From the NCBI RefSeq assembly GCF_000150275.1, contig NW_002060943.1, forward strand, positions 3,003,264 to 3,067,263: a stretch of 64,000 bases of DNA, written 5' to 3'. The DNA comes from Trichoplax adhaerens (Eukaryota; Animalia; Placozoa). A program made the position numbers and the translations under genes. The notes under the pieces were generated by a model, which was not told the DNA's origin, ran no database searches, and saw nothing but the letters and a program-made list of their open reading frames with translations. Of the stretch, positions 1 through 51,106 are shown in pieces. Each line of letters opens with the position of its first letter. The first letter of the stretch is position 1.

Positions 1-201
1 TGACTTGAGGAGATCATTCTGCAACGATTTTAAGCTATGATGTAGCCACCACAGACTGGCTTTACCCAATTTCCATTTGCCAGGCGTTTCTTGATCCAAA
101 ATATAAATGATAACAACATGGCCTCGTTTAGCAGCATGAAATAATGCTGGGTTGTCAATTAATCGTAAGTCGTATCTAAGCCAGACGACTGTACAAACCA
201 T
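1..201 (-). CDS. phr: DNA photolyase/cryptochrome family protein, paralog 2; 5' part only, runs off the window edge
   Basis: The reverse strand from the ATG at 201 translates without a stop to MVCTVVWLRYDLRLIDNPALFHAAKRGHVVIIYILDQETPGKWKLGKASLWWLHHSLKSLQNDLLKS. This has the photolyase N-terminal WxRxDLRxxDNPAL and WWLHHSL motifs and is clearly similar to the N-terminus of 1585..3096. Confidence 0.93.
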   Translation of the reverse strand, partial: MVCTVVWLRYDLRLIDNPALFHAAKRGHVVIIYILDQETPGKWKLGKASLWWLHHSLKSLQNDLLKS

Positions 202-459
202 TTCTTGTCAATTTTTTTCCAATTTAGCAGTTAATACATTCAGTAGTCATTTAGCATATGCACTTTGATAAACGGTGCATGTGATATTTAGTGTAATTTA
301 CACTTCATCACTAGCTAGCAAGAAATACCTAGCAGACCGTTTGGCCTAATAACACAAGATGCTAGAGGAAGCTCTTTGTTGAAGTATACTTTATAATCGA
401 CTTGATCCCTTTACTCTATATCATGCAATATGCTTATTTTATTAGGAATTCAGGATAAG

Positions 460-737
460 CTAAATTACGTCCAATTTTTTTAGAACAAATCAAACCCTTA
501 ACGTTGGTCTCCAATTTGAGCCAGTAATTGCTTTCTAGCTTTAAGCCTTTACAGATTTGGAATTTGACAACTTGGGCAGAATCTTCGTCCAAGCCTCCAC
601 CCTCGTATACTTCGCTATATTAGCAATTTAGAATAAACAAATTCAACTAAATTACGTCCAACTCTTTCTCCAATTTTGAAAAAAGTAATTGCTTTGTAGC
701 TTTAGGTCTTTGCAAGTTTGGAATTCGACAACTTGGA
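460..737. repeat. Imperfect direct duplication (two copies of about 90-115 bp) in the photolyase intergenic spacer
   Basis: ctaaattacgtccaa...agtaattgcttt.tagcttta.g.cttt...tttggaatt.gacaacttgg occurs at about 460-575 and about 647-737. Confidence 0.8.
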
Positions 738-1110
738 TATGATCTTGATCAATGACTGTATCGTTGTACTCTCTGCTACCGCTGATGATATCGTTGTTAA
801 TTTTAAATTGTAGATTGAGCAATCCAAAAGGAGAAACCCATTGAAATCTTCATACAACTGCTAAGGACGATCAAAGGCATTGATTTAGCATATAGATCAG
901 GTCTACTCTAGCAGAAGCTTGCTCCAAGCTGTCGAGGGAAGCTGCTGCAAATGATGGAAGCAAGCCCGATACGACCGTATCATAGCAATACCGTATCACC
1001 ACGGTGTTGTTTGTAATCCAGCCTGTCAGTATCTTGCTCAATGCTCAGTATTAGGACCGCACTCTTACACTAAACAGTCTAGTATCATAGTAAAGGCGAA
1101 AAGAGTCGAG

Positions 1111-1130
1111 CTACTTGTTCGAACAAGTTT
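1111..1130. promoter_or_regulatory. Candidate p53-family response element
   Basis: CTACTTGTTC-GAACAAGTTT is two RRRCWWGYYY half-sites with zero spacer (second perfect, first 8/10). It contains a perfect 16-bp palindrome at 1113-1128. Confidence 0.4.
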
Positions 1131-1584
1131 GCGGTGGTAATTAATTCATCAGCTGCGCTTGAGCTCTTCTGCTAGTAGCTGCTGCACAGACTACAGAAAT
1201 TACCTTAGCAAATGCCATAAAGCTCCTACAACGTGTCTAAAACTTTTTACAGTGTAAGCTGAACTTGCCGCAATCTTGTTTAGTGCTGCGTAAGATATAA
1301 TATTGCAATCAATAGTTTGTAGCTGATGATCTTGATCGCTATTAACTAGAACACGAATGCTGCAGCTCTGCTTGTGATGGCATTAGTAGTCCCCGGTAAT
1401 AAAGACGTAGTATATCCGTTTTCACTCTGTCAAAATCCTTAGCATAACACTTCTCCTCTTGGATCGGATACAGGATAATAACGATCATTTCGGTTGGGTT
1501 TATATCAATGTAGATGATCAAACTGACCAAAATTAAACCAAATCAGCATCATTGGCTGTTGCAGAATAGAAACCCTACTTCCTC

Positions 1585-3096
1585 ATGTCATCTTCAAAGA
1601 TACCTTGCACGCTGGTGTGGTTACGCCAAGATTTAAGATTAATTGATAATCCTGCATTATTTCATGCTGCAAAACGTGGTCAACTTATTACTGTTTACAT
1701 TTTCGATGAAGATTGCTCTGGCAAAAGGAGAACAGGCCAAGCTTGTTTATGGTGGCTGTATCATAGCTTGAAATCATTGCGTAATCAACTAAGCCAATGG
1801 AATATTCCCCTCATTGTGAAAAGCGGTAAAGATGCATTTACTATTTTAAAGGAGTTGCTCGATAGTTATAACGCCGATGCAATTTATTGGAATCGTTGTT
1901 ATGAACCATTTGAATATAATCGAGATTGCTCGATAGAAGAAAAATTAAAAATGGAAAACGTTACCGTTGAAACCTATCAAGATAGAGTATTATTCGAACC
2001 ATGGACAATCAAGACAGCCAAAGGAGGACCTGTACAGATATATGTTCACTTCTGGAATCAGTGCTTGTCATTACCACAACCTCGCAAACCTTACGACAAA
2101 CCTAAATTTAAGAATCAAACTGGGTGCCAAAGTAAATGCGATGAGCCAGCAGTGTGGCAACGATTGGCCAAATTATCACAGGATATGCCAATGAAATTAC
2201 AAGATTTCTGGCATCCAGGCGAGGAGCAAGCAATTTCAAAACTAAAATCCTTTATTAAAAATTCATTAAATGCTTATGCAGAAAAGAGTCAATGCCTGCG
2301 GTTAAATACAACATCCAATTTATCACCTTACTTACATTTCGGTGAGATTAGCCCTTTCACTGTCTGGCATAGTGTTCGTCACGCATCCTCCTCTGCAGAG
2401 CCACCTGCAGTCAAATCAGAAAGCTTAAAACAATATCTTCGTTCGCTAGGATGGAGAGAATACACATGCCACTTACTATTTCATTACCCTGATTTACCTC
2501 AGAAATGTTTTCGATCCAGTTTTGAGCAATTAAAACTACAAGTCGATCCAGTCAAATTGCAATCATGGCAGCAAGGTAACACCGGTTATCCAGTTGTTGA
2601 TGCTGGCATGCGCCAACTCTCAGTGGCAGGTATCATGCCGAATCGTCTTCGAATGATTGTGGCGTCATTTTTAATTAAGCACTTATTAGTCCCATGGCAA
2701 AAAGGAGAAGAATGGTTCTGGAGCAAATTAATTGATGCTGATTTAGCTCAAAATGCATTCAATTGGCAATGGGCAGCCGGAAGTGGACCTAACGCATGTC
2801 CTTATTTTCGCGTTTTTAACCCGATAACCCAAGGTGAAAAGTTTGATGCCGATGGTTATTATGTGCGAAAGTGGATACCTGAACTTGCTGCATTGCCTAA
2901 CGCGTACATACATAAACCATGGGAAGCACCTTCTACTGTATTAAAGAAAGCAAATATAGTACTAGGTAAAACGTATCCTCGACCAATAGTACAACACAAA
3001 GCAGCTCGTGAACTTGCTTTAGCTACATTTGGACAAACCAAGCGTAAGCAAGAACCTCCAACAAGCAACAGCAATAAACGAGTAAAAGAAGAGTAG
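1585..3096 (+). CDS. phr: Photolyase/cryptochrome family protein (class I/III CPD-photolyase-like), intronless, 503 aa
   Basis: Motifs WLRQDLRLIDNPAL, TSNLSPYLHFGEIS, GWREY, GNTGYPVVDAGMRQL, NRLRMIVASFL, DADLAQNAFNWQWAAG, PYFRVFNP and YVRKWIPEL. Single uninterrupted ORF. Confidence 0.96.
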   Translation: MSSSKIPCTLVWLRQDLRLIDNPALFHAAKRGQLITVYIFDEDCSGKRRTGQACLWWLYHSLKSLRNQLSQWNIPLIVKSGKDAFTILKELLDSYNADAIYWNRCYEPFEYNRDCSIEEKLKMENVTVETYQDRVLFEPWTIKTAKGGPVQIYVHFWNQCLSLPQPRKPYDKPKFKNQTGCQSKCDEPAVWQRLAKLSQDMPMKLQDFWHPGEEQAISKLKSFIKNSLNAYAEKSQCLRLNTTSNLSPYLHFGEISPFTVWHSVRHASSSAEPPAVKSESLKQYLRSLGWREYTCHLLFHYPDLPQKCFRSSFEQLKLQVDPVKLQSWQQGNTGYPVVDAGMRQLSVAGIMPNRLRMIVASFLIKHLLVPWQKGEEWFWSKLIDADLAQNAFNWQWAAGSGPNACPYFRVFNPITQGEKFDADGYYVRKWIPELAALPNAYIHKPWEAPSTVLKKANIVLGKTYPRPIVQHKAARELALATFGQTKRKQEPPTSNSNKRVKEE

Positions 3097-4554: not shown

Positions 4555-5659
4555 TCAGCGAGTTTGGCAGCTTCTATTGCTGATGCAGGCTAGTATATTT
4601 TGAAATTGAGCATCCATTAAAGAAGATCGTAACTTTTCTAGAAGGAAAAGATCTTTAGTCGACATGCCAGTAACACGCTTCCAATGCTCAAGTGTATCAC
4701 TGCCCTGTTTAATAAATTCTTCAAATCCTTCTTGATTGTTTTTGCTTACAAAAAATCGCGATCGGCATTCATCAAAGTCCGGCTTACATTCTCGTTTTAA
4801 TTCCTGGATGAAATTATCATAACTCTCTTGTCTAATCTTGCAATATAAACTTTTGGCTTTACCGATTAAAGAATTTTCTAATCTCAAAAAACGTTCTTCT
4901 TTTGGCCACCCTTGCAACTGTGAAATCATATTAAATCTGCGAATGAACATTTCAATATCTTCATTTTTATCCATTTGAAACGATTCGGTTAATCCTTCCT
5001 CTTGCAGCGATGAGGCTAACGAATATTTCGACGGCGAGGAAACTAAATCCTTGTTGTTGCCTCCTGATTTAGATTTACATGAGCTATGACCAACCGATAT
5101 TCGCCTCGTGGGCAACGATAAAGAATCATTGGATGATGGAACTACAGAAAATATCATCCACAGCCTCTTCCCTTTCTTGCACTGAGCTGTGATCGTTAGG
5201 AATATCATCCCTTGACTGAACTGGAACTTTATGTAGAAAAATAAAATTTAAAATCTATCCTGAAGAATACCATCACGATAACAATTTAATCCTGCTTACC
5301 ATCTAGAAATTGTTGAAATTCGTCTTGATATTTAAGGAATGTTTTTTCGAGTTCTAATGCAATTTTCTCTCTAGGCTTCTTATTGGTACATAATTTAAAT
5401 CTTATATATCGACGCCATGAAACCATATAAGAGCCTCTAGCAGCTTGAATTAAGCCATGTATGAATCCTTTAAGGGCTTCTTCCGGTAATTTATCTACCT
5501 TATTAATTATACTTGCCTTCAGAGCAGTCATCCATTGATCATCATAGACGTGGGATGTTGTGATATTATTGCTACTGATAGATGTAACCTGTTGAACGAT
5601 AAAATAAAATCATTAGTGAAACTATTTCAATAAAATTCAGCCCTAATAAGTACCTCCAT
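4555..5659 (-). CDS. Spliced gene (about 293 aa) with a C-terminal Ty3/gypsy Gag capsid/SCAN-like domain; predicted exons 5659-5654, 5588-5300, 5141-4555
   Basis: Phase-compatible GT-AG junctions (ATGGAG|gtactt...caacag|GTT; GATG|gtaagc...tctgtag|TTCCA) give 882 nt. The segment DIEMFIRRFNMISQLQGWPKEERFLRLENSLIGKAKSLY...YDNFIQEL...CRSRF...LEHW...DLFLLEKL follows the gypsy Gag pattern. Confidence 0.7.
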
Positions 5660-11746: not shown

Positions 11747-14011
11747 TTATGTATTTATAATCAAATTCTTGCAAGCATTATGTAGACCATTCAGATGAGC
11801 AGTCTCGTAAAATTGATTTATATGCCTATCAAATGCTGCATATTCCTGAAAAAGAATATTCTCATGAGCATTAGCAGTATTAAATTCATCAGCATTTGCT
11901 TTCGTCTTGCATTTTAGCCACTGCTTAACTTTATTATATAAATTTTCTCTTCGGAAGAGATTTCGTCGAGTACTATTGCCATATTTTTGATTGATGGCCT
12001 GAACTGCAACTTCATCTGCCCTTTTCAAAGCAATATAATAAGCAATAAGGATAGCAGCGCTTTTCATCTCTTCATTCTTCATGCGATCAATAGTCTTGAA
12101 AATGCAAGGCAAAATTTTATTTTTTACTTCATACGACACATAGATTGTGGCATATACCCAGTAAGCGAAAACTTGACAAGTCATTGCTTTCGTTTTCCAA
12201 TCATGATCTAGAAATGAGCCAATAAAATCAATAACTTTAAATTTGTTGGAGTTTCTACATAAAAAGGCCAAATTTCGAATGATAACCAGAAGCATTCCAT
12301 TATTGTAAGAGAGATGCTTGGCTAAATTCTGCAGAAGTTGCATGTAATCACTGATGATAGAAGCTGCTTGATCGCGTACAGCTTCCGATAATTCTCGAAG
12401 TAGATCATTAAACAATTCATGATTGCATTTTTGTATATGATTGTAAAATTCCTCAGACCATCGATTACCAAAAAGTTGGAAAACAGTAATAAAAGCTTTA
12501 GCTTTAGAACAAATTGCCCATTCTGTAGGATCAAAGATATTGATACACCATTGCATTTTTAATTTCCAAGCTAAATGAGTTATATCATCTTGACTCAAAA
12601 AGCTGCCATCAAGCCGATGTCGAAATTTATCCATGCAACTTAGCATTAGACGTTGATAAGGCATCTCTAGCTGATTCCACAGTCGTTGATAACAACCTAA
12701 TCGGCGAAATGATGTTAATGCAATGTCCATCATCTTACTACAAACTTCTGGTTGCTTTTCACGACTAATGATATCAACTAAAATTTGCAAACTAAAACAG
12801 GACAAATTCGCATCATTACCATTCAATATTTTGACCAACCATCCAATACATCGTAAACTATAACTTTCAGGGATATAGCTTTTCCATCGCTCTTTAAACA
12901 AAGAAAGGATAAAATCAATCAATGAGGTAGGATAAAACTTGTTATAATCCATTATTTCCAGTAGATCATTTAAATAATCCACAATATCAATCCACTTGGT
13001 TATTTTAATGGCGTAAGCAATGACACAGGTACGTTTAATTCGGTCTTTAAGTTCGCTTGGAGTTAAGGAATCTGAATGAGTAAGTTGATTCTGACTGCGA
13101 GCTGCGGAAACAACTTTTATCCATTTGCATTTCAACAACTTTTCTTCATCACTGCCGTCGATGCACTGATCAATGTAATTAACAAGCTGAGTTAGCTCTA
13201 AAATTTGAAATATATGCTGAAAACTTGGATCGACCGAAGTAAAATTGTCTAATGAAAGTGAACACTTTGTTTTAGTTAAATTGGTACAAGGGATTTTAAG
13301 ACTTGATTGATCGACATCGTAAGTGATAGCAATAGCAAGTAACATTTGATAATATTTATGGTTAGCTTTCCTTCTTTCTTCGGATACGAATTCCGATATA
13401 ACAAAATCGCAATAAACATATTTCAATGCTTTTAAATTCTGATTTGAAATATTGTTAAGGGCAAATAAATGGGCATAAACGTTATGGGATAATTTCTTTG
13501 CGTAAAATATACCATAATCGTCGATTCCATCATTATCAATAGGGCAAATCAATTTATATAATTCCTGCCTCAGGATATATTTCAATAGGAGTAATCCATC
13601 ATTATGACTTTGAATAAATTGGAAGATATCGCTAGTAAAAGCGATCGCGTATTCTTCTTGCAACTGGCTAGTAGAAACAATCTTCTCCTCCAGTTCCACA
13701 TCATCAGTGTGATGTTGATTATAATAGATGTTGACAGGTTTCTTTAATTCTGCAGACATTATTTCTATCATTTGCTTTAATTTTGGGTCACGATTAATGA
13801 AGGTTTCAAATCTGACAACACGATTGCTTGCTTTTTCACTTTCTTTTGCTGGAATGGAGTCCACTGTACCTTTAAGGTGTTCGATAGCCACATTATTTTT
13901 CGCTTGATCAGCCAGAAAAGCTGTCATTTCATCTAAGATTCCATCAGCAGTTGGAGAATCAGTTTCACTGCTCTTTGATGGTATTGCTGGTTGATAATTT
14001 CCACAAGTAAC
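11747..14011 (-). CDS. Large uncharacterised, mostly alpha-helical protein (726 aa or more); C-terminal half ARM/HEAT-like
   Basis: A 726-codon ORF in AT-rich DNA. The frame stays open upstream of the ATG at 13927 up to a splice acceptor (ttattcgtag|GTT) at 14011. Amphipathic helical composition; no family recognised with confidence. Confidence 0.8.
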   Translation of the reverse strand, partial: VTCGNYQPAIPSKSSETDSPTADGILDEMTAFLADQAKNNVAIEHLKGTVDSIPAKESEKASNRVVRFETFINRDPKLKQMIEIMSAELKKPVNIYYNQHHTDDVELEEKIVSTSQLQEEYAIAFTSDIFQFIQSHNDGLLLLKYILRQELYKLICPIDNDGIDDYGIFYAKKLSHNVYAHLFALNNISNQNLKALKYVYCDFVISEFVSEERRKANHKYYQMLLAIAITYDVDQSSLKIPCTNLTKTKCSLSLDNFTSVDPSFQHIFQILELTQLVNYIDQCIDGSDEEKLLKCKWIKVVSAARSQNQLTHSDSLTPSELKDRIKRTCVIAYAIKITKWIDIVDYLNDLLEIMDYNKFYPTSLIDFILSLFKERWKSYIPESYSLRCIGWLVKILNGNDANLSCFSLQILVDIISREKQPEVCSKMMDIALTSFRRLGCYQRLWNQLEMPYQRLMLSCMDKFRHRLDGSFLSQDDITHLAWKLKMQWCINIFDPTEWAICSKAKAFITVFQLFGNRWSEEFYNHIQKCNHELFNDLLRELSEAVRDQAASIISDYMQLLQNLAKHLSYNNGMLLVIIRNLAFLCRNSNKFKVIDFIGSFLDHDWKTKAMTCQVFAYWVYATIYVSYEVKNKILPCIFKTIDRMKNEEMKSAAILIAYYIALKRADEVAVQAINQKYGNSTRRNLFRRENLYNKVKQWLKCKTKANADEFNTANAHENILFQEYAAFDRHINQFYETAHLNGLHNACKNLIINT

Positions 14012-20500: not shown

Positions 20501-23437
20501 TATTTTCTTCCGTCGTATGCCATTTCAAGTTTCATCCTACCAATTCTACCTATTATTTTGCTAATATGAACAAGCGATTAGAAAATGGTTATATTTTAGT
20601 CAATTGCATCAGCTACAGTGGCTACTGATCTAATTTAGCCCTATTCTTTCATCACGCGCTTGTAATGACAAAGATCAAAAAGCATTTCGACTTTAAATTA
20701 CTAAACCTAGAAGACTAAGTTATATTCATCTTATCGATAAGATAAACGAAAACAACGGTACCATCGATAGCTACAGACGTTCTAATAATTGTAAAATTAT
20801 TTATGTAACAATAGTCTTCCCTGTAAAGAGCTCTTACCATGTATAATAAATTGTACATTGATAGTAAGCAGATTTGATGACTGTTAAAAAGTTATTTTAT
20901 ATTCAATATTTTCTAGTTGGACAATTGTAAAGTAAAGATTGCAGATGGGCAGTTTCAATACTATAAAAGAAATAATATTTACTAAAGTTCTAGAAACACC
21001 TATGGGATTTGCTATCATAATGTAACAAAATTACTTAAATTATTATGCATTCCAATATACTGTAAATAAAATCGAAATATTTTAAAAGCTAGCAATAAAA
21101 AATGAATGTTATTGCAAGCTTTCATTATTTCAGAACTTTTTTATGATGAAAAGCCATGGCGTCACTATCTTAATAACGAAATTAGAGGGGGAATTTACTA
21201 AGTAGAAGTCGATGTATTAACATATTAATATTTTTCAAGCCTCTAAAGTAGACATTGATTAAAATTGATGAAATAACTTAAAATGGCACTCATTCTACCA
21301 TCACAATTAGATTATGAAGTACATTCATCGAATACAGATGAAATTGTATGTTAAAGCTTAAAGTAGTTATGATAATATGAAAAAAGCTACTAGTAATCTG
21401 CGGCAGAATCTGCGTGATTGTTTACTTTCTGATTAAGATTCACCTGCATCATGACAGTTATAGCTCTTCCCCTATTGCCTTAATTGATCGACTAAACTTG
21501 TGATAATATAGAGTAACTACATGAATAGGCCCTTTAGTTTGTTTTCTAGCTGCCACAATAGAATTAATAAGAATAAATTCTATGATACTCATTCATCTTA
21601 CATATTAGTCAGATAAATCTATCAAAGCAAAACATACGGTGTCAATAAAGTGTGAAGAAGGATTATGTACTCATTCTATCAGTCTAGAAGTCGATCAACA
21701 TTTGCTACTTGAGGATAACATTCTAGATGCAGTTATAGTCAAATCTTGAAGTGAATGATTCAAATAATTTTATTAACTCTTAGTAAATAGGATACGTATC
21801 TATTTCGGCCACTTACCTGCTGCATAAAACTTATATCTAATATTAGGTGATTAAAATAATTTGTGTGATTCCATTTGATTGATCCAGATAGATTATAATA
21901 TGTAATCTCACAATTAAAACTCAAAATCACACAGTATGCAGCATGCAAACAGATATTACAGATCGAGGGATGAGTCTATTCTATCACGATAGAATCTAAA
22001 AATATCTATTCGTCATTTCAAAGACTGTTGTTGGCTTACAATGAAAGATTATGATCTAATACGACAGTTTTATTGATACGCCCCTATCATAGAAATCAAT
22101 CTGACCGAAATTAGTTAAAACCTGCATGAAGTCTAATTGAATATGTACCTAATTTCAGCTTATTACAATGTGGATGTAAGTACGTTTGATAAAGAAACTG
22201 CTTCAAAGCAATGTTGTAGATTTAGTAAGAAAGATACACTCGTACAATATTAATATACATTGATAGAAAAAACTAACTAGGTCTTATAGCGAAGTAAATT
22301 TAACACATTTGTGATTTCAATCCTTGCATTGGAACAATTCCGATAATTTCAAAATAATATTGACTTCAGATATTCTAGAAACATCATGTAAGTGGACTGA
22401 AATTTGCATTCATCTTTATCTTATTATTTTTTATTTTCGATACAGATTAATGTATTCATGTAATTTTATTCACCATGCCATCAACCAAGGTCTTAATGAT
22501 TGGTTTTTGTGAGTATTTGTGGTTATCATCATTGAACTGTAAGCGTATATTGTTTTTTAAGGTATTTTTTAAATTATCATGGATTTTTAATGGTCTGATA
22601 AAAGAATCCTACGACCGTTAAATAATAAGGAACAATATTTCTCAATTTTTTCTATCATTCTTATTATCCTTATTCACCGCTTGTAATTGTGATATCTTCT
22701 TTTACTTAATAATTAATTTATTGCCATCAAAATATAAAGATTAAAGCAACATGCGTACGATGGTAGCATTGTATTTTATTATCCTACTGACCATGAATAA
22801 TTTTATAGATATTGTGATAGTTAGCAGGAATTAATTTGTATTTGATTGTTATTTTAGATTATATTGTAAAATGACGTTCATATCTAATTCTTTAATTTCT
22901 TTGAAATAGATAAATTGGAGTCCTAATCACTGATTTGTATTCTATGTATGACGAAGATAAATTGCGTAGAATTTTTTATTGAATTATGGACAATAATGTT
23001 TGAATAGGCTGTTTTGAAGCTTAATTAACATTTTATAGCGAATCAATTATTTTACTTCTATCCAATTGAATATCAAAATAAAAAATAGGTAAATAAGATC
23101 ATTAATTGATTTCTAAATAAATTAAGAGTACTCTTTGTCATCGTTTCATTTAGGGAGGCTTCTAGAGGCATCTCTGATAACCAATTCTACTGTAACTCAC
23201 CAGTATATTAGTACTATCTTTACATAGGTAGCAACAACCAGGAATATCACTGGCACCTTCAGAATATCGAAATCCTGGCTTAACATTTTCAGTAGCAAGT
23301 CTTTTAAATTAAAATTAATCTTAATATCACGGAATTTGAAAACACTGATAATTCAATGGAAGCCAATCTTACAGCATGAAAGAGCATCGAATTTAAAAGA
23401 ACCTAAAAAGTATATGTTAAGAATAGATCTGTTCACG

Positions 23438-24415
23438 ATGAACGATTCCAATTTAACTCGTTATTTTACACCGATTGAAACAACATTTATTGCATTTATT
23501 ATGCTATTAGCTATGGCGTTAACATTATTTGGCAATTGTTTAGTCTTGCTTTATGTCTGCCCTAAAATTGCTATAAGAACGGTTGCTGGTGGATTAATGA
23601 CTAATTTAGCTATTGTCGACTTATTAGTGGGTTGCTTATTAATGCCGTTTAATGCGGTATCATTCCTTTTTTCTGGTTGGTATTTTGAGCCAAGTACTTG
23701 CCAATTTTTTGCTTTCGTCAATACAACACTATGCATTCTATCTACATTAACGTTGTCTATCATTAGTCTTGATCGTTATATCTGCATAGCGAAACCTTTA
23801 CAATATCACTCAATATTTACCATACTCTCTATACGCTTTATTATACCGTTTTTATGGATTATTGCTTTGACAATTGCTAGCTTACCATTCTTCCATATTG
23901 GTCGATACGCCTATGTTAGTCATGAATTTCAATGTTGGATATTACCTTCCTCCAGTATTCGGTTAATTATAATCATTTTAAGTATTTTATGCTTTTGTGT
24001 CACCATCATTTTAATTAGTTATTCCCTGATCTATAATGAAGCACGTAAAACCAAGCGTAGAATTGCTTGTATCAGTTCTATTTCGAACAATTCATCACGT
24101 ATGCGCCATTATGACTATAAAACGGCCAAAACTATGTTATTAGTGGTTGGCCTATTTCTAAGTTGTTGGATACCACGTACAATATTATTGCTATGGTATA
24201 CACAAAATAATTCTTCCACATTTCAAGCTACATGGCCGTTGCTGTGTACATGGTTAGCTCTAACCAACTCTACTATTAATCCATTTATTTACTGTGTACA
24301 TAATTCATACTATCGTAGTATTTTAATGATGGCGTTGAAAAGACAGTGCTGTAAACGACGTAGCCGCACTCATAACACAGCCAGGAATTTTCCCTTAAGT
24401 ATGTATAATAACTGA
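23438..24415 (+). CDS. Class A (rhodopsin-like) GPCR, intronless CDS, orphan
   Basis: Seven hydrophobic segments with GN (TM1), NLAIVD (TM2), C...SLDRY (TM3), W (TM4), CWIP (TM6), NPFIY (TM7) and a C-terminal CC. The likely start MNDSNLT at 23438 carries N-glycosylation sequons. Confidence 0.95.
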   Translation: MNDSNLTRYFTPIETTFIAFIMLLAMALTLFGNCLVLLYVCPKIAIRTVAGGLMTNLAIVDLLVGCLLMPFNAVSFLFSGWYFEPSTCQFFAFVNTTLCILSTLTLSIISLDRYICIAKPLQYHSIFTILSIRFIIPFLWIIALTIASLPFFHIGRYAYVSHEFQCWILPSSSIRLIIIILSILCFCVTIILISYSLIYNEARKTKRRIACISSISNNSSRMRHYDYKTAKTMLLVVGLFLSCWIPRTILLLWYTQNNSSTFQATWPLLCTWLALTNSTINPFIYCVHNSYYRSILMMALKRQCCKRRSRTHNTARNFPLSMYNN

Positions 24416-50209: not shown

Positions 50210-51106
50210 TTATATAATAAAATTTAACGCTTGCCTCTCAACAGGACTTAGCTGATAATGCCATAAATCAATTAACAAAATAACACGATCTTGATCGTTG
50301 CTATCATGCTGTACACTGTGAAGATAGGAATCATCAAAGAGTAGGCATTGGCCATCAACCCATTGACGAGTTTCATTGCCAACCTTTAAGCTACATTGAG
50401 ATGGTGTATGAAGGGTCAAATGACAACGTATCCTATAATTGCATGGACCATAATGAGGTGCAATCTTTGTTGATGGTATAATTTTAGAAAAGCAAGCATT
50501 ACCAAAGACATTGCCACGCATAAAATGACGCAATTGATGATCTATTAGATGAGTTGTTTGTGGGCAGATTTGACAGTTTTCAACGACTTTATGGCCTTGA
50601 TTATACAAGTAAAATAACGTCCAACTGCCTTCCTTTTCTTGATTATGACACCAGCCCTTTGAAAACGTTTGAGCTGCATAATAATCATCACGTATTAAGT
50701 AGAGATTTTCTTGTAATATCTGTATATCTTGCATTAATGGGTGATTAGTAGCTAATGTGTACCAAGGTTGGGTTAAGATGTAAGGCAAATAAAGTGATGT
50801 AGGACATTGCAATGTACAAGGTGATGCATTTTTTACCGTGATTCCATCGTTCTTAACGATATTATCTAGTACTTGATACAAGTTTGTTAAATGTTCTTGG
50901 CTATTAGTCAATTTTATGAACTGTTGCAATTTTAGATGTAGTAATTGGTAATCTATTGCACCACAACGCATGCAGTTCGGTGATGAACAACCCGTTTTGG
51001 AGTGAGGGTTGTAAGGCTTCTTGTCAAGCCATCTACTCTTCAATGTAAATAACAGGACAGGAGAGATTACAGCAATTAAAGCGATGACTAACCATTCCAT
51101 AGCCAA
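50210..51106 (-). CDS. ASPHD2: Aspartate beta-hydroxylase domain-containing protein (2OG/Fe(II) dioxygenase), single coding exon
   Basis: N-terminal TM anchor, CSSPNCMRC motif, W..FYLYNQG, NC..CP.T, FGNACFS, IAPHYGPCNYRIRCHL, FDDSYLHSV and RVILLIDLWH. Confidence 0.9.
   Translation of the reverse strand: MAMEWLVIALIAVISPVLLFTLKSRWLDKKPYNPHSKTGCSSPNCMRCGAIDYQLLHLKLQQFIKLTNSQEHLTNLYQVLDNIVKNDGITVKNASPCTLQCPTSLYLPYILTQPWYTLATNHPLMQDIQILQENLYLIRDDYYAAQTFSKGWCHNQEKEGSWTLFYLYNQGHKVVENCQICPQTTHLIDHQLRHFMRGNVFGNACFSKIIPSTKIAPHYGPCNYRIRCHLTLHTPSQCSLKVGNETRQWVDGQCLLFDDSYLHSVQHDSNDQDRVILLIDLWHYQLSPVERQALNFII

Follow-up and report, generated by a model that had tools for sequence, protein, structure and literature searches.

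A photolyase paralog of Trichoplax adhaerens with an intact flavin site, a partly substituted dimer pocket and evidence of purifying selection

The 64 kb stretch of Trichoplax adhaerens DNA analysed here, referred to below as the window, carries near its start an intact and intronless coding sequence for a photolyase paralog, P1 (positions 1585-3096, forward strand; 503 amino acids plus stop in the list of open reading frames, ORFs). The product has the two domains of the cryptochrome/photolyase family (CPF), both matched far above the cut-off: an N-terminal alpha/beta (antenna-binding) domain (residues 9-165; 1609-2079, forward; Pfam PF00875, DNA_photolyase, E 8.9e-44), modelled with confidence by AlphaFold2 (AF2), and a helical domain that binds flavin adenine dinucleotide (FAD; residues 285-482; 2437-3030, forward; Pfam PF03441, FAD_binding_7, E 3.9e-83). 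It lies in a cluster of three tandem class III-type photolyase genes within about 12 kb, in the order P3 (reverse strand, 497 amino acids), P2 (forward, 513 amino acids) and P1 (forward). An earlier note on this DNA, concerned with positions 2032-2793 (exactly codons V150 to N403 of P1), had proposed that the flavin pocket is retained, that residues for repair and photoreduction are lost, and that P1 is possibly an independently evolved cryptochrome; the evidence presented here favours a modified photolyase.

By sequence, the nearest solved structure to P1 was that of the class III photolyase PhrA of Agrobacterium tumefaciens (PDB 4u63, E 1e-131), followed by plant cryptochromes (E 1e-99) and then by Escherichia coli photolyase (E 2e-81). 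The AF2 model of P1 was computed from 120 aligned sequences and had a predicted local distance difference test score (pLDDT) of 93 and a predicted template modelling score (pTM) of 0.92, with disorder confined to the last ~20 residues. A Foldseek comparison ranked 4u63 PhrA first (template modelling score, TM, 0.94), then Arabidopsis thaliana CRY1 (AtCRY1, 0.92) and E. coli Phr (0.87), and the top PDB matches were CPF members throughout. None of the NCBIfam models reached its curated cut-off for P1; the highest-scoring one was a plant cryptochrome subfamily (389.7 versus 603.85 bits). The ortholog in Trichoplax sp. H2, annotated as deoxyribodipyrimidine photo-lyase, is 99% identical to P1. Assignment as a 6-4 photolyase was rejected, for the positions N341-M345 do not hold the His-His-x-x-Arg-His motif.

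P1 was aligned with MAFFT to E. coli Phr (NC_000913; the literature numbering used here is the translation index minus 1) and compared with 116 full-length and 120 fragment bacterial homologs (236 in all) and with 77 independent named genomes, from at least 8 phyla. Each of the residue pairs that had been matched by eye was reproduced in this alignment to E. coli Phr and the bacterial class III homologs. The following residues are kept (E. coli, with the P1 residue in brackets): Y222 (Y231), T234/S235/L237/S238 (T243/S244/L246/S247), W277 (W290), R278 (R291), N341/R342/R344/M345 (N353/R354/R356/M357), W359 (W371), D372/D374 (D384/D386), N378 (N390), W382/W384 (W394/W396) and R397 (R409). All FAD contacts, namely Y222, T234, S235, S238, R278, the R344-D372 salt bridge and D374, are thereby identical, the residue next to the flavin N5 is Asn390, as in photolyases, and site 377 holds a polar residue, Gln389; the retention of the flavin pocket was thus borne out. 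The sites listed for E. coli photolyase are E274, W277, N341, M345 and W384 for the CPD (cyclobutane pyrimidine dimer) substrate and R344, D372, A377, N378 and G381 for FAD (PMC8476157; lists also in PMC5812317). Against these lists, P1 keeps four of the five substrate sites (W277, N341, M345 and W384) and is compatible at five of the five flavin sites. When the substrate list is extended by R226, R342 and R397, six of the eight residues are kept, and E274 and R226 are both Ser. K407 is retained as well, and 15 of the 22 conserved basic positions are kept, equal to P2, at an isoelectric point (pI) of 9.2.

The substitutions in P1 exceed ordinary variation, as they fall on positions (R226, E274, F280, W306, H340 and D391) that are invariant or nearly so in bacteria. 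Ser235 (2287-2289, forward; codon AGT) takes the place of R226, a contact to lesion and backbone that is Arg in 116 of 116 and 77 of 77 bacterial homologs and in P2 (AGA). Ser287 (2443-2445, forward; codon TCG) takes that of E274, which hydrogen-bonds to the 5' base of the dimer; this site holds Glu in 283 and Gln in 29 of 312 bacterial homologs (209 and 26 in the first set, 74 and 3 in the second) and Ser in none, and to reach the P1 codon from GAR at least two nucleotide changes are needed, the sole stop-free path leading via Ala. R226 and E274 are residues that we take to contact, both of them, the 5' half of the dimer. Tyr293 (2461-2463, forward; codon TAC) replaces F280 (Phe in 235 of 236), which turns WREF into WREY, as in the plant CRY motif LREY, and Asn403 (2791-2793, forward) replaces D391 (GxDA to GPNA; Asp in 235 of 236 and 77 of 77). 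The comparison with P2, called for by the earlier note, separates these four changes (R226S, E274S, F280Y and D391N), found in P1 and not in P2, from three that both copies have: Leu318 for the distal Trp of the triad, W306 (2536-2538, forward; codon CTA, the same codon in P2; Trp in 230 of 236 and 77 of 77, Leu never), Pro352 for H340 (2638-2640, forward; GWMHNR to GIMPNR; His in 233 of 236, Pro in 2) and Ser346 for the Trp of the class III QLW motif (2620-2622, forward; Trp in 109 of 116). Because P2 has them too, W306L, H340P and the change from QLW to QLS are not specific to P1, and their origin is placed before the P1/P2 duplication. Two further changes on which the earlier note had drawn are real and carry less weight: W338 (I350 in P1) is a naturally variable site (W, Y, T, F or V; Thr in PhrA), and in the YKVFTPF-type motif (VQIYVHF in P1) the T-P of FTPFW is altered in all three placozoan copies. 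At 117 columns, conservation among bacteria is 97% or more; deviations from these number 8 in P1, 7 in P2 and 13 in P3, with a bacterial mean of 1.0.

The two other T. adhaerens paralogs carry changes of their own. P2 (TRIADDRAFT_51591; L002:637-2178, equal to G000:C1414:2997608-2999149, forward) keeps the whole CPD pocket and has N378S at the N5-proximal position, a site that is Asn in 236 of 236 and 77 of 77 bacteria, and further changes at invariant sites (K-to-M and A392V). P3 (TRIADDRAFT_51590; L003:1429-2922, reverse) has a remodelled pocket (N341Y, M345T, W384R and R397Y, with the hydrophobic Leu at site 377), and its ortholog P0004 from Logan run SRR30664516 (L008:1125-2630, forward) holds a non-canonical pattern at these sites as well (Y, T, H, F, L). 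The ratio of nonsynonymous to synonymous divergence (dN/dS) between P3 and this ortholog is 0.08, and the non-canonical P3 pocket is under strong constraint.

P1 and P2 were compared over codons 116-503, which gave dS 1.07, dN 0.22 and dN/dS 0.205 (bootstrap 95% interval 0.137-0.283); in windows of 60 codons no value exceeded 0.45, and the FAD domain lay between 0.11 and 0.20. No significant excess fell on the P1 branch: relative-rate counts for P1:P2 were 35:22, 22:25 and 14:9 (against P3 or the bacterial consensus; not significant), and a three-point split of dN assigned 0.118 to P1 and 0.101 to P2. The dN/dS of P1 between the present strain (H1) and H2 has no power, as codons 116-503 (1164 nt) are identical and all 14 differences fall in the 5' part, which has been converted (see below). 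P1 is kept by purifying selection, with a constraint somewhat weaker than that on P3. A pseudogene was rejected on the same grounds, since the ORF is intact and dN/dS is low despite a dS of ~1.07 to P2. The earlier note had argued for functional change rather than decay, and as far as decay is concerned this is answered by the intact ORF and the dN/dS of 0.20 (confidence interval, CI, 0.14-0.28).

The classical electron-transfer triad W382-W359-W306 is incomplete in P1, in which W394 and W371 are kept and the distal residue is Leu318. Two extra Trps that are conserved in class III, W328 and W377, are also kept and correspond to W318 and W367 of PhrA (counted on the alignment to 4u63); we take the latter pair to be an alternative electron route of the A. 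tumefaciens enzyme. In E. coli, W306 is reportedly dispensable in vivo (the W306F mutant, work of Kavakli and Sancar in 2004). The SPL class has no equivalent of W306, and one of its members repairs CPDs (PMC8476157). It is a matter of debate whether photoactivation has to take place in vivo (PMC3204975). To call photoreduction lost was therefore an overstatement: the distal W306 is gone, W382, W359, W328 and W377 are kept, and the active SPL class is likewise without W306. Within the antenna domain, residue 48 (window 1726-1728) is Arg in both P1 and P2, at a position that is Trp in class III (103 of 116; aligned to E. coli H44). At residues 109-110 (window 1909-1914) the two copies have a Glu versus the class III Ala; it aligns with E. 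coli E109, which presumably binds folate in the class I enzyme. The way in which P1 binds an antenna may differ from that of PhrA, and is uncertain given W48R versus the class III consensus.

The protein ends ~20 residues past the homology region, and no C-terminal extension of the cryptochrome type was found in P1. These last residues contain a basic stretch that resembles a bipartite nuclear localisation signal (NLS; KRK, ten residues, KRVK; 3040-3090, forward) and is predicted to be disordered (pLDDT 53-74). A K/R-rich tail with the bipartite NLS pattern is present in all placozoan copies and in 0 of the 116 bacterial homologs. Judged by this pattern, the placozoan tails are a putative eukaryotic feature, contrary to Driscoll et al. 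(PMC3641634), and P1 is predicted to be a nuclear-targeted flavoprotein.

The presence of photolyase genes in Trichoplax and their bacterial origin are already published: Driscoll et al. (2013; PMC3641634) listed four bacterial-like photolyases, P1 among them, as PhrB_1-4 candidates for lateral transfer and inferred a non-rickettsial source, Deppisch et al. (2022; PMC9498864) called the same Trichoplax photolyase a 'CPDIII' all-rounder, and both treat the genes as ordinary repair enzymes 'without eukaryotic-like features'. Maximum-likelihood trees, with E. coli class I as outgroup and a set composed of placozoan and bacterial sequences without plant CRYs, gathered the placozoan copies into a single clade (support 100) that lies within the bacterial class III sequences, which included the Agrobacterium, Shinella and Brevundimonas lineages. 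Within it P1 and P2 are sisters, and P3 groups with P0004, to which it is 78% identical. The clade topology together with the P3/P0004 grouping suggests one acquisition, with duplication before these two placozoan lineages split, and points to descent of P1-P3 from a single bacterial gene for a class III CPD photolyase that an ancestor of the placozoans would have gained. In the named tree the placozoan clade adjoins the uncultured Rickettsiales metagenome-assembled genome CAYXPR010000017.1 (L010) as well as P0045 and P0037, with a value of 86 in the Shimodaira-Hasegawa-like approximate likelihood ratio test (SH-aLRT), which is not decisive. Trichoplax hosts a rickettsial endosymbiont.

The T. 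adhaerens assembly spans 105.6 Mb over 1414 contigs; the scaffold that holds the window measures 13.3 Mb. No family members were found in this genome outside the cluster and a distant fragment similar to P1 (TRIADDRAFT_19715; 385 codons; G000:C1414:3285292-3286443, equal to L006:5293-6444), which lies 280 kb from the cluster between runs of N. The fragment is 97% identical to P1 and also has S235, S287, L318 and P352, and its 5' end matches the P1 of the H2 strain, not the converted P1 of the present strain; the fragment probably represents an allelic contig, or a misplaced one, from which the published 'PhrB_4' was drawn.

The 5' part of P1 lies in a duplication or gene-conversion tract of ~1.9 kb (window 3-1927), which is ~98.5% identical (~28 mismatches) to a region 7 kb upstream. 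That source (G000:C1414:2996025-2997950, located by blastn) holds P3's 5' end, the spacer that separates P3 from P2, and codons 1-115 of P2; the tract spans the promoter region and codons 1-115 of P1, so that P1 of the present strain carries the upstream region and N-terminus of P2. In codons 1-115, P1 and P2 differ by a dS of 0.04, and in the codons after these by 1.07. Trichoplax sp. H2 does not have the tract in front of P1, where its upstream region is unrelated to that of P2. The tract lies outside P1 residues 150-403. At the very start of the window (1-192, reverse strand) it includes a copy of the first ~64 codons of P3, head-to-head with P1 and cut by the window start (PF00875 match at 10-192). 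Directly upstream of the window is an assembly gap (N-run 3001960-3002999 and beyond), and as the tract abuts this gap, it may reflect a misjoin, an allelic contig or one more copy that is hidden.

The window has a GC content of ~32% and is sparse in ORFs of at least 150 amino acids (nine per 64 kb). Two of these are host genes: an intronless ORF for a G protein-coupled receptor (GPCR) of the rhodopsin family (23336-24415, forward; 7tm_1, E 2e-46) and an ORF (exon) with an Asp/Asn beta-hydroxylase domain (50210-51106, reverse; E 1.7e-48). The ORFs at 4555-5208 (reverse, 217 amino acids) and 11747-13927 (reverse, 726 amino acids) had no Pfam match. The GPCR and beta-hydroxylase ORFs confirm the eukaryotic context. 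Bacterial contamination was rejected as a source of P1, in view of the 13.3 Mb scaffold, the eukaryotic neighbour genes, the P3-P2-P1 order that recurs in the independent assembly of Trichoplax sp. H2, and a host-like GC content at third codon positions (GC3 of P1, 0.31).

Among known systems, the class III PhrA (PDB 4U63; Caulobacter-type) is the closest solved counterpart of P1 (~44-50% identity, TM 0.94, root-mean-square deviation 1.9 A), and it shares the two-domain build, the FAD contacts, the W277/W384/M345/N341 pocket and the extra Trps. P1 differs from it by R226S, E274S, F280Y, W306L, H340P, D391N and the Ser of the QLW motif, and by being an animal nuclear gene with an NLS-like basic tail and AT-rich codon usage. 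The fold and the flavin site of P1 are photolyase-type, and the clamp around the dimer (W277, W384, M345 and N341) is intact; the subsite for the 5' base appears to be neutralised, with R226 and E274 both Ser and F280Y and D391N nearby. The existing photolyase annotation is a reasonable one. We therefore regard P1 as a candidate nuclear flavoenzyme with reduced or shifted dimer repair, that is as a modified photolyase, a reading that we hold at about half of full confidence; P1 is probably a weakened or re-tuned repair enzyme and not a proven new light sensor.

As a modified photolyase, P1 would most likely still bind a flipped dimer in DNA and split it by light-driven electron transfer from the reduced flavin FADH-. 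On the standard T<>T dimer its quantum yield and affinity would be lower, or its preference among lesions or substrates would be shifted. Its flavin would be reduced by cellular reductants or via the retained Trps instead of the lost W306. At the E274 equivalent, exchange of Glu for Ala brings the quantum yield of repair down from 0.82 to 0.40, as quoted in PMC5812317, and does not abolish repair. For this reason the statement that repair residues are lost was too strong: E274 and R226 are indeed gone, whereas four of the five CPD residues, R342 and R397 are kept, and the Glu-to-Ala mutant retains 0.40. A literature search for E274A and R226A mutants returned nothing, and mutant effects are cited here second-hand. 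The E. coli class I mutants E274A and W306F have natural equivalents in P1, and N378S has one in P2, with the difference that each of these E. coli variants alters one residue of a class I enzyme and P1 combines several changes. Asn378 is called crucial for repair in the title of a 2008 study by Xu et al. By that yardstick P2 may be more impaired than P1, and among the three paralogs P1 could be the one best able to repair CPDs. P1 would divide labour with P2 (canonical pocket with N378S) and P3 (remodelled pocket).

Several points weigh against a modified repair enzyme. None of the ~310 bacterial homologs has Ser at R226 or E274 or has Asn at D391, so that no natural active enzyme is known to have the pocket of P1, and R226S, E274S, F280Y and D391N combined could by far exceed the damage of a single Glu-to-Ala change. 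H340P together with the absence of three Trps that are otherwise conserved (W306, W201 and that of QLW) makes an unprecedented combination. The dN/dS of ~0.2 for P1/P2 is 2.5 times that of P3, so that some relaxation is possible. A full-length word search for orthologs of the P1/P2 type in other placozoans recovered just the P3 ortholog P0004, with P1 residues 270-503 as query no placozoan fragment exceeded 61% identity, and the conservation of S235, S287 and N403 is attested for a single, very close pair, H1/H2. Literature searches found no mention of the gene-model identifiers of the Trichoplax photolyases, no evidence of expression, and no biochemical or genetic data on P1; a search on placozoan light or UV biology gave nothing useful.

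The first alternative is that P1 is a cryptochrome-like photoreceptor or regulator which binds FAD and senses light without repair, in parallel to and independently of the plant cryptochromes; this role is less likely than a modified photolyase, and we would give it about one chance in four. Plant cryptochromes are the sister group of class III photolyases, and the plant proteins (A. thaliana CRY1 and CRY2 and maize CRY1; E 1e-99, TM 0.92) are the second-best relatives of P1. They share with it Ser at E274 and Tyr at F280 (S287 and Y293 are the states of plant CRY1, 'LKSIGLREY') and Pro before D391 (Pro402, as in plant 'LPD'). The loss of R226, an invariant contact to lesion and backbone, also fits a sensor, as does the purifying selection under which the altered pocket is maintained; the top NCBIfam profile is a plant cryptochrome subfamily, though well under its cut-off, and in an animal without any other member of the family three diverging paralogs invite new functions. 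The remaining states are opposite to those of P1. Where P1 has the N5-proximal Asn of photolyases, plant cryptochromes have Asp (AtCRY1 D396) and insect cryptochromes Cys (PMC9356274), and the polar residue at site 377 favours FADH-, which polar residues at this site stabilise, with benefit to repair (PMC9356274). W277, W384, M345 and N341, intact in P1, are L, Y, V and D in plant CRY1, so that of a degenerate pocket of the plant type P1 shares just the change of E274 to Ser, with W290, W396, M357 and N353 photolyase-type. The plant proteins have kept R226 and a complete Trp triad, and they carry a long extension at the C-terminus, as against the ~20 NLS-like residues of P1. The loss of the distal Trp, which hinders photoreduction from an oxidised resting state, is no argument for a cryptochrome either, because a cryptochrome needs photoreduction more than a photolyase does. 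Single residue swaps, moreover, do not make a photolyase a CRY (PMC9356274). What speaks for the suggested independently evolved cryptochrome are the plant-CRY1 states at three positions (E274, F280 and the one before D391) and the loss of R226; the change at N5, the loss of the clamp and the long C-terminal extension are missing. The wider proposal that the captured class III photolyase was triplicated, and that at least the P1 copy is on its way to becoming a nuclear, flavin-based sensor of light, or a regulator, that does not repair, is in our opinion slightly more doubtful still.

P1 might also be a redundant duplicate under relaxed constraint, drifting to loss or having just lost its function, with the paralogs covering repair. 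The dN/dS of ~0.2 for P1/P2 next to 0.08 for the P3 orthologs would suit such a course, as would the departures of the paralogs at 7-13 of the 117 near-invariant columns (bacterial mean 1.0) and the recent overwriting of the 5' part and promoter region of P1 by a copy from P2 in the present strain. The evidence on selection makes it improbable: the ORF has stayed intact over 503 codons at an own-branch dS of ~0.5, at which neutrality would be expected to give many stops and frameshifts, and the upper limit of the interval for dN/dS (0.28) excludes that one copy has been neutral since the duplication. P1 has evolved no faster than P2, its FAD domain has a dN/dS of 0.11-0.14, H1 and H2 are identical over 1164 nt, and the change from Glu to Ser took two successive fixed replacements. 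Some photolyases stimulate excision repair in the dark, and an equally improbable alternative is that P1 is a light-independent or lesion-sensing DNA-binding protein, for instance one that recruits excision repair, in which catalysis is dispensable; the clamp, R342, R397 and K407, the pI of 9.2 and the NLS-like tail agree with this, as does the loss of the catalytic helpers E274 and R226 from between retained binding walls, but no direct evidence supports it, R226 itself contributes to binding, and all flavin contacts, needless for pure binding, are conserved under strong constraint.

Because there is no other photolyase or cryptochrome in the Trichoplax genome, photoreactivation or flavin-based light sensing in this early-branching animal must come from the bacterial-derived cluster (PMC3641634; PMC9498864). 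Neither of these papers describes the NLS-like tails, the estimates of selection or the conversion tract, and the way in which each paralog has been altered at invariant residues of its active site while under purifying selection appears to be unreported. In each of the three paralogs the invariant active site is incomplete, and purifying selection nonetheless acts on all of them, so that the cluster constitutes a natural experiment on the diversification of photolyases after transfer to a eukaryote, starting from the class that also gave rise to the plant cryptochromes. If P1 still repairs DNA, an enzyme could do without the E274/R226 subsite more readily than the invariance of this subsite in bacteria suggests; failing such repair, P1 would be a candidate for a newly arisen cryptochrome, and, should the sensor interpretation be true, for a replay in an animal lineage of the step from photolyase to plant cryptochrome, in an animal that has no other cryptochrome.

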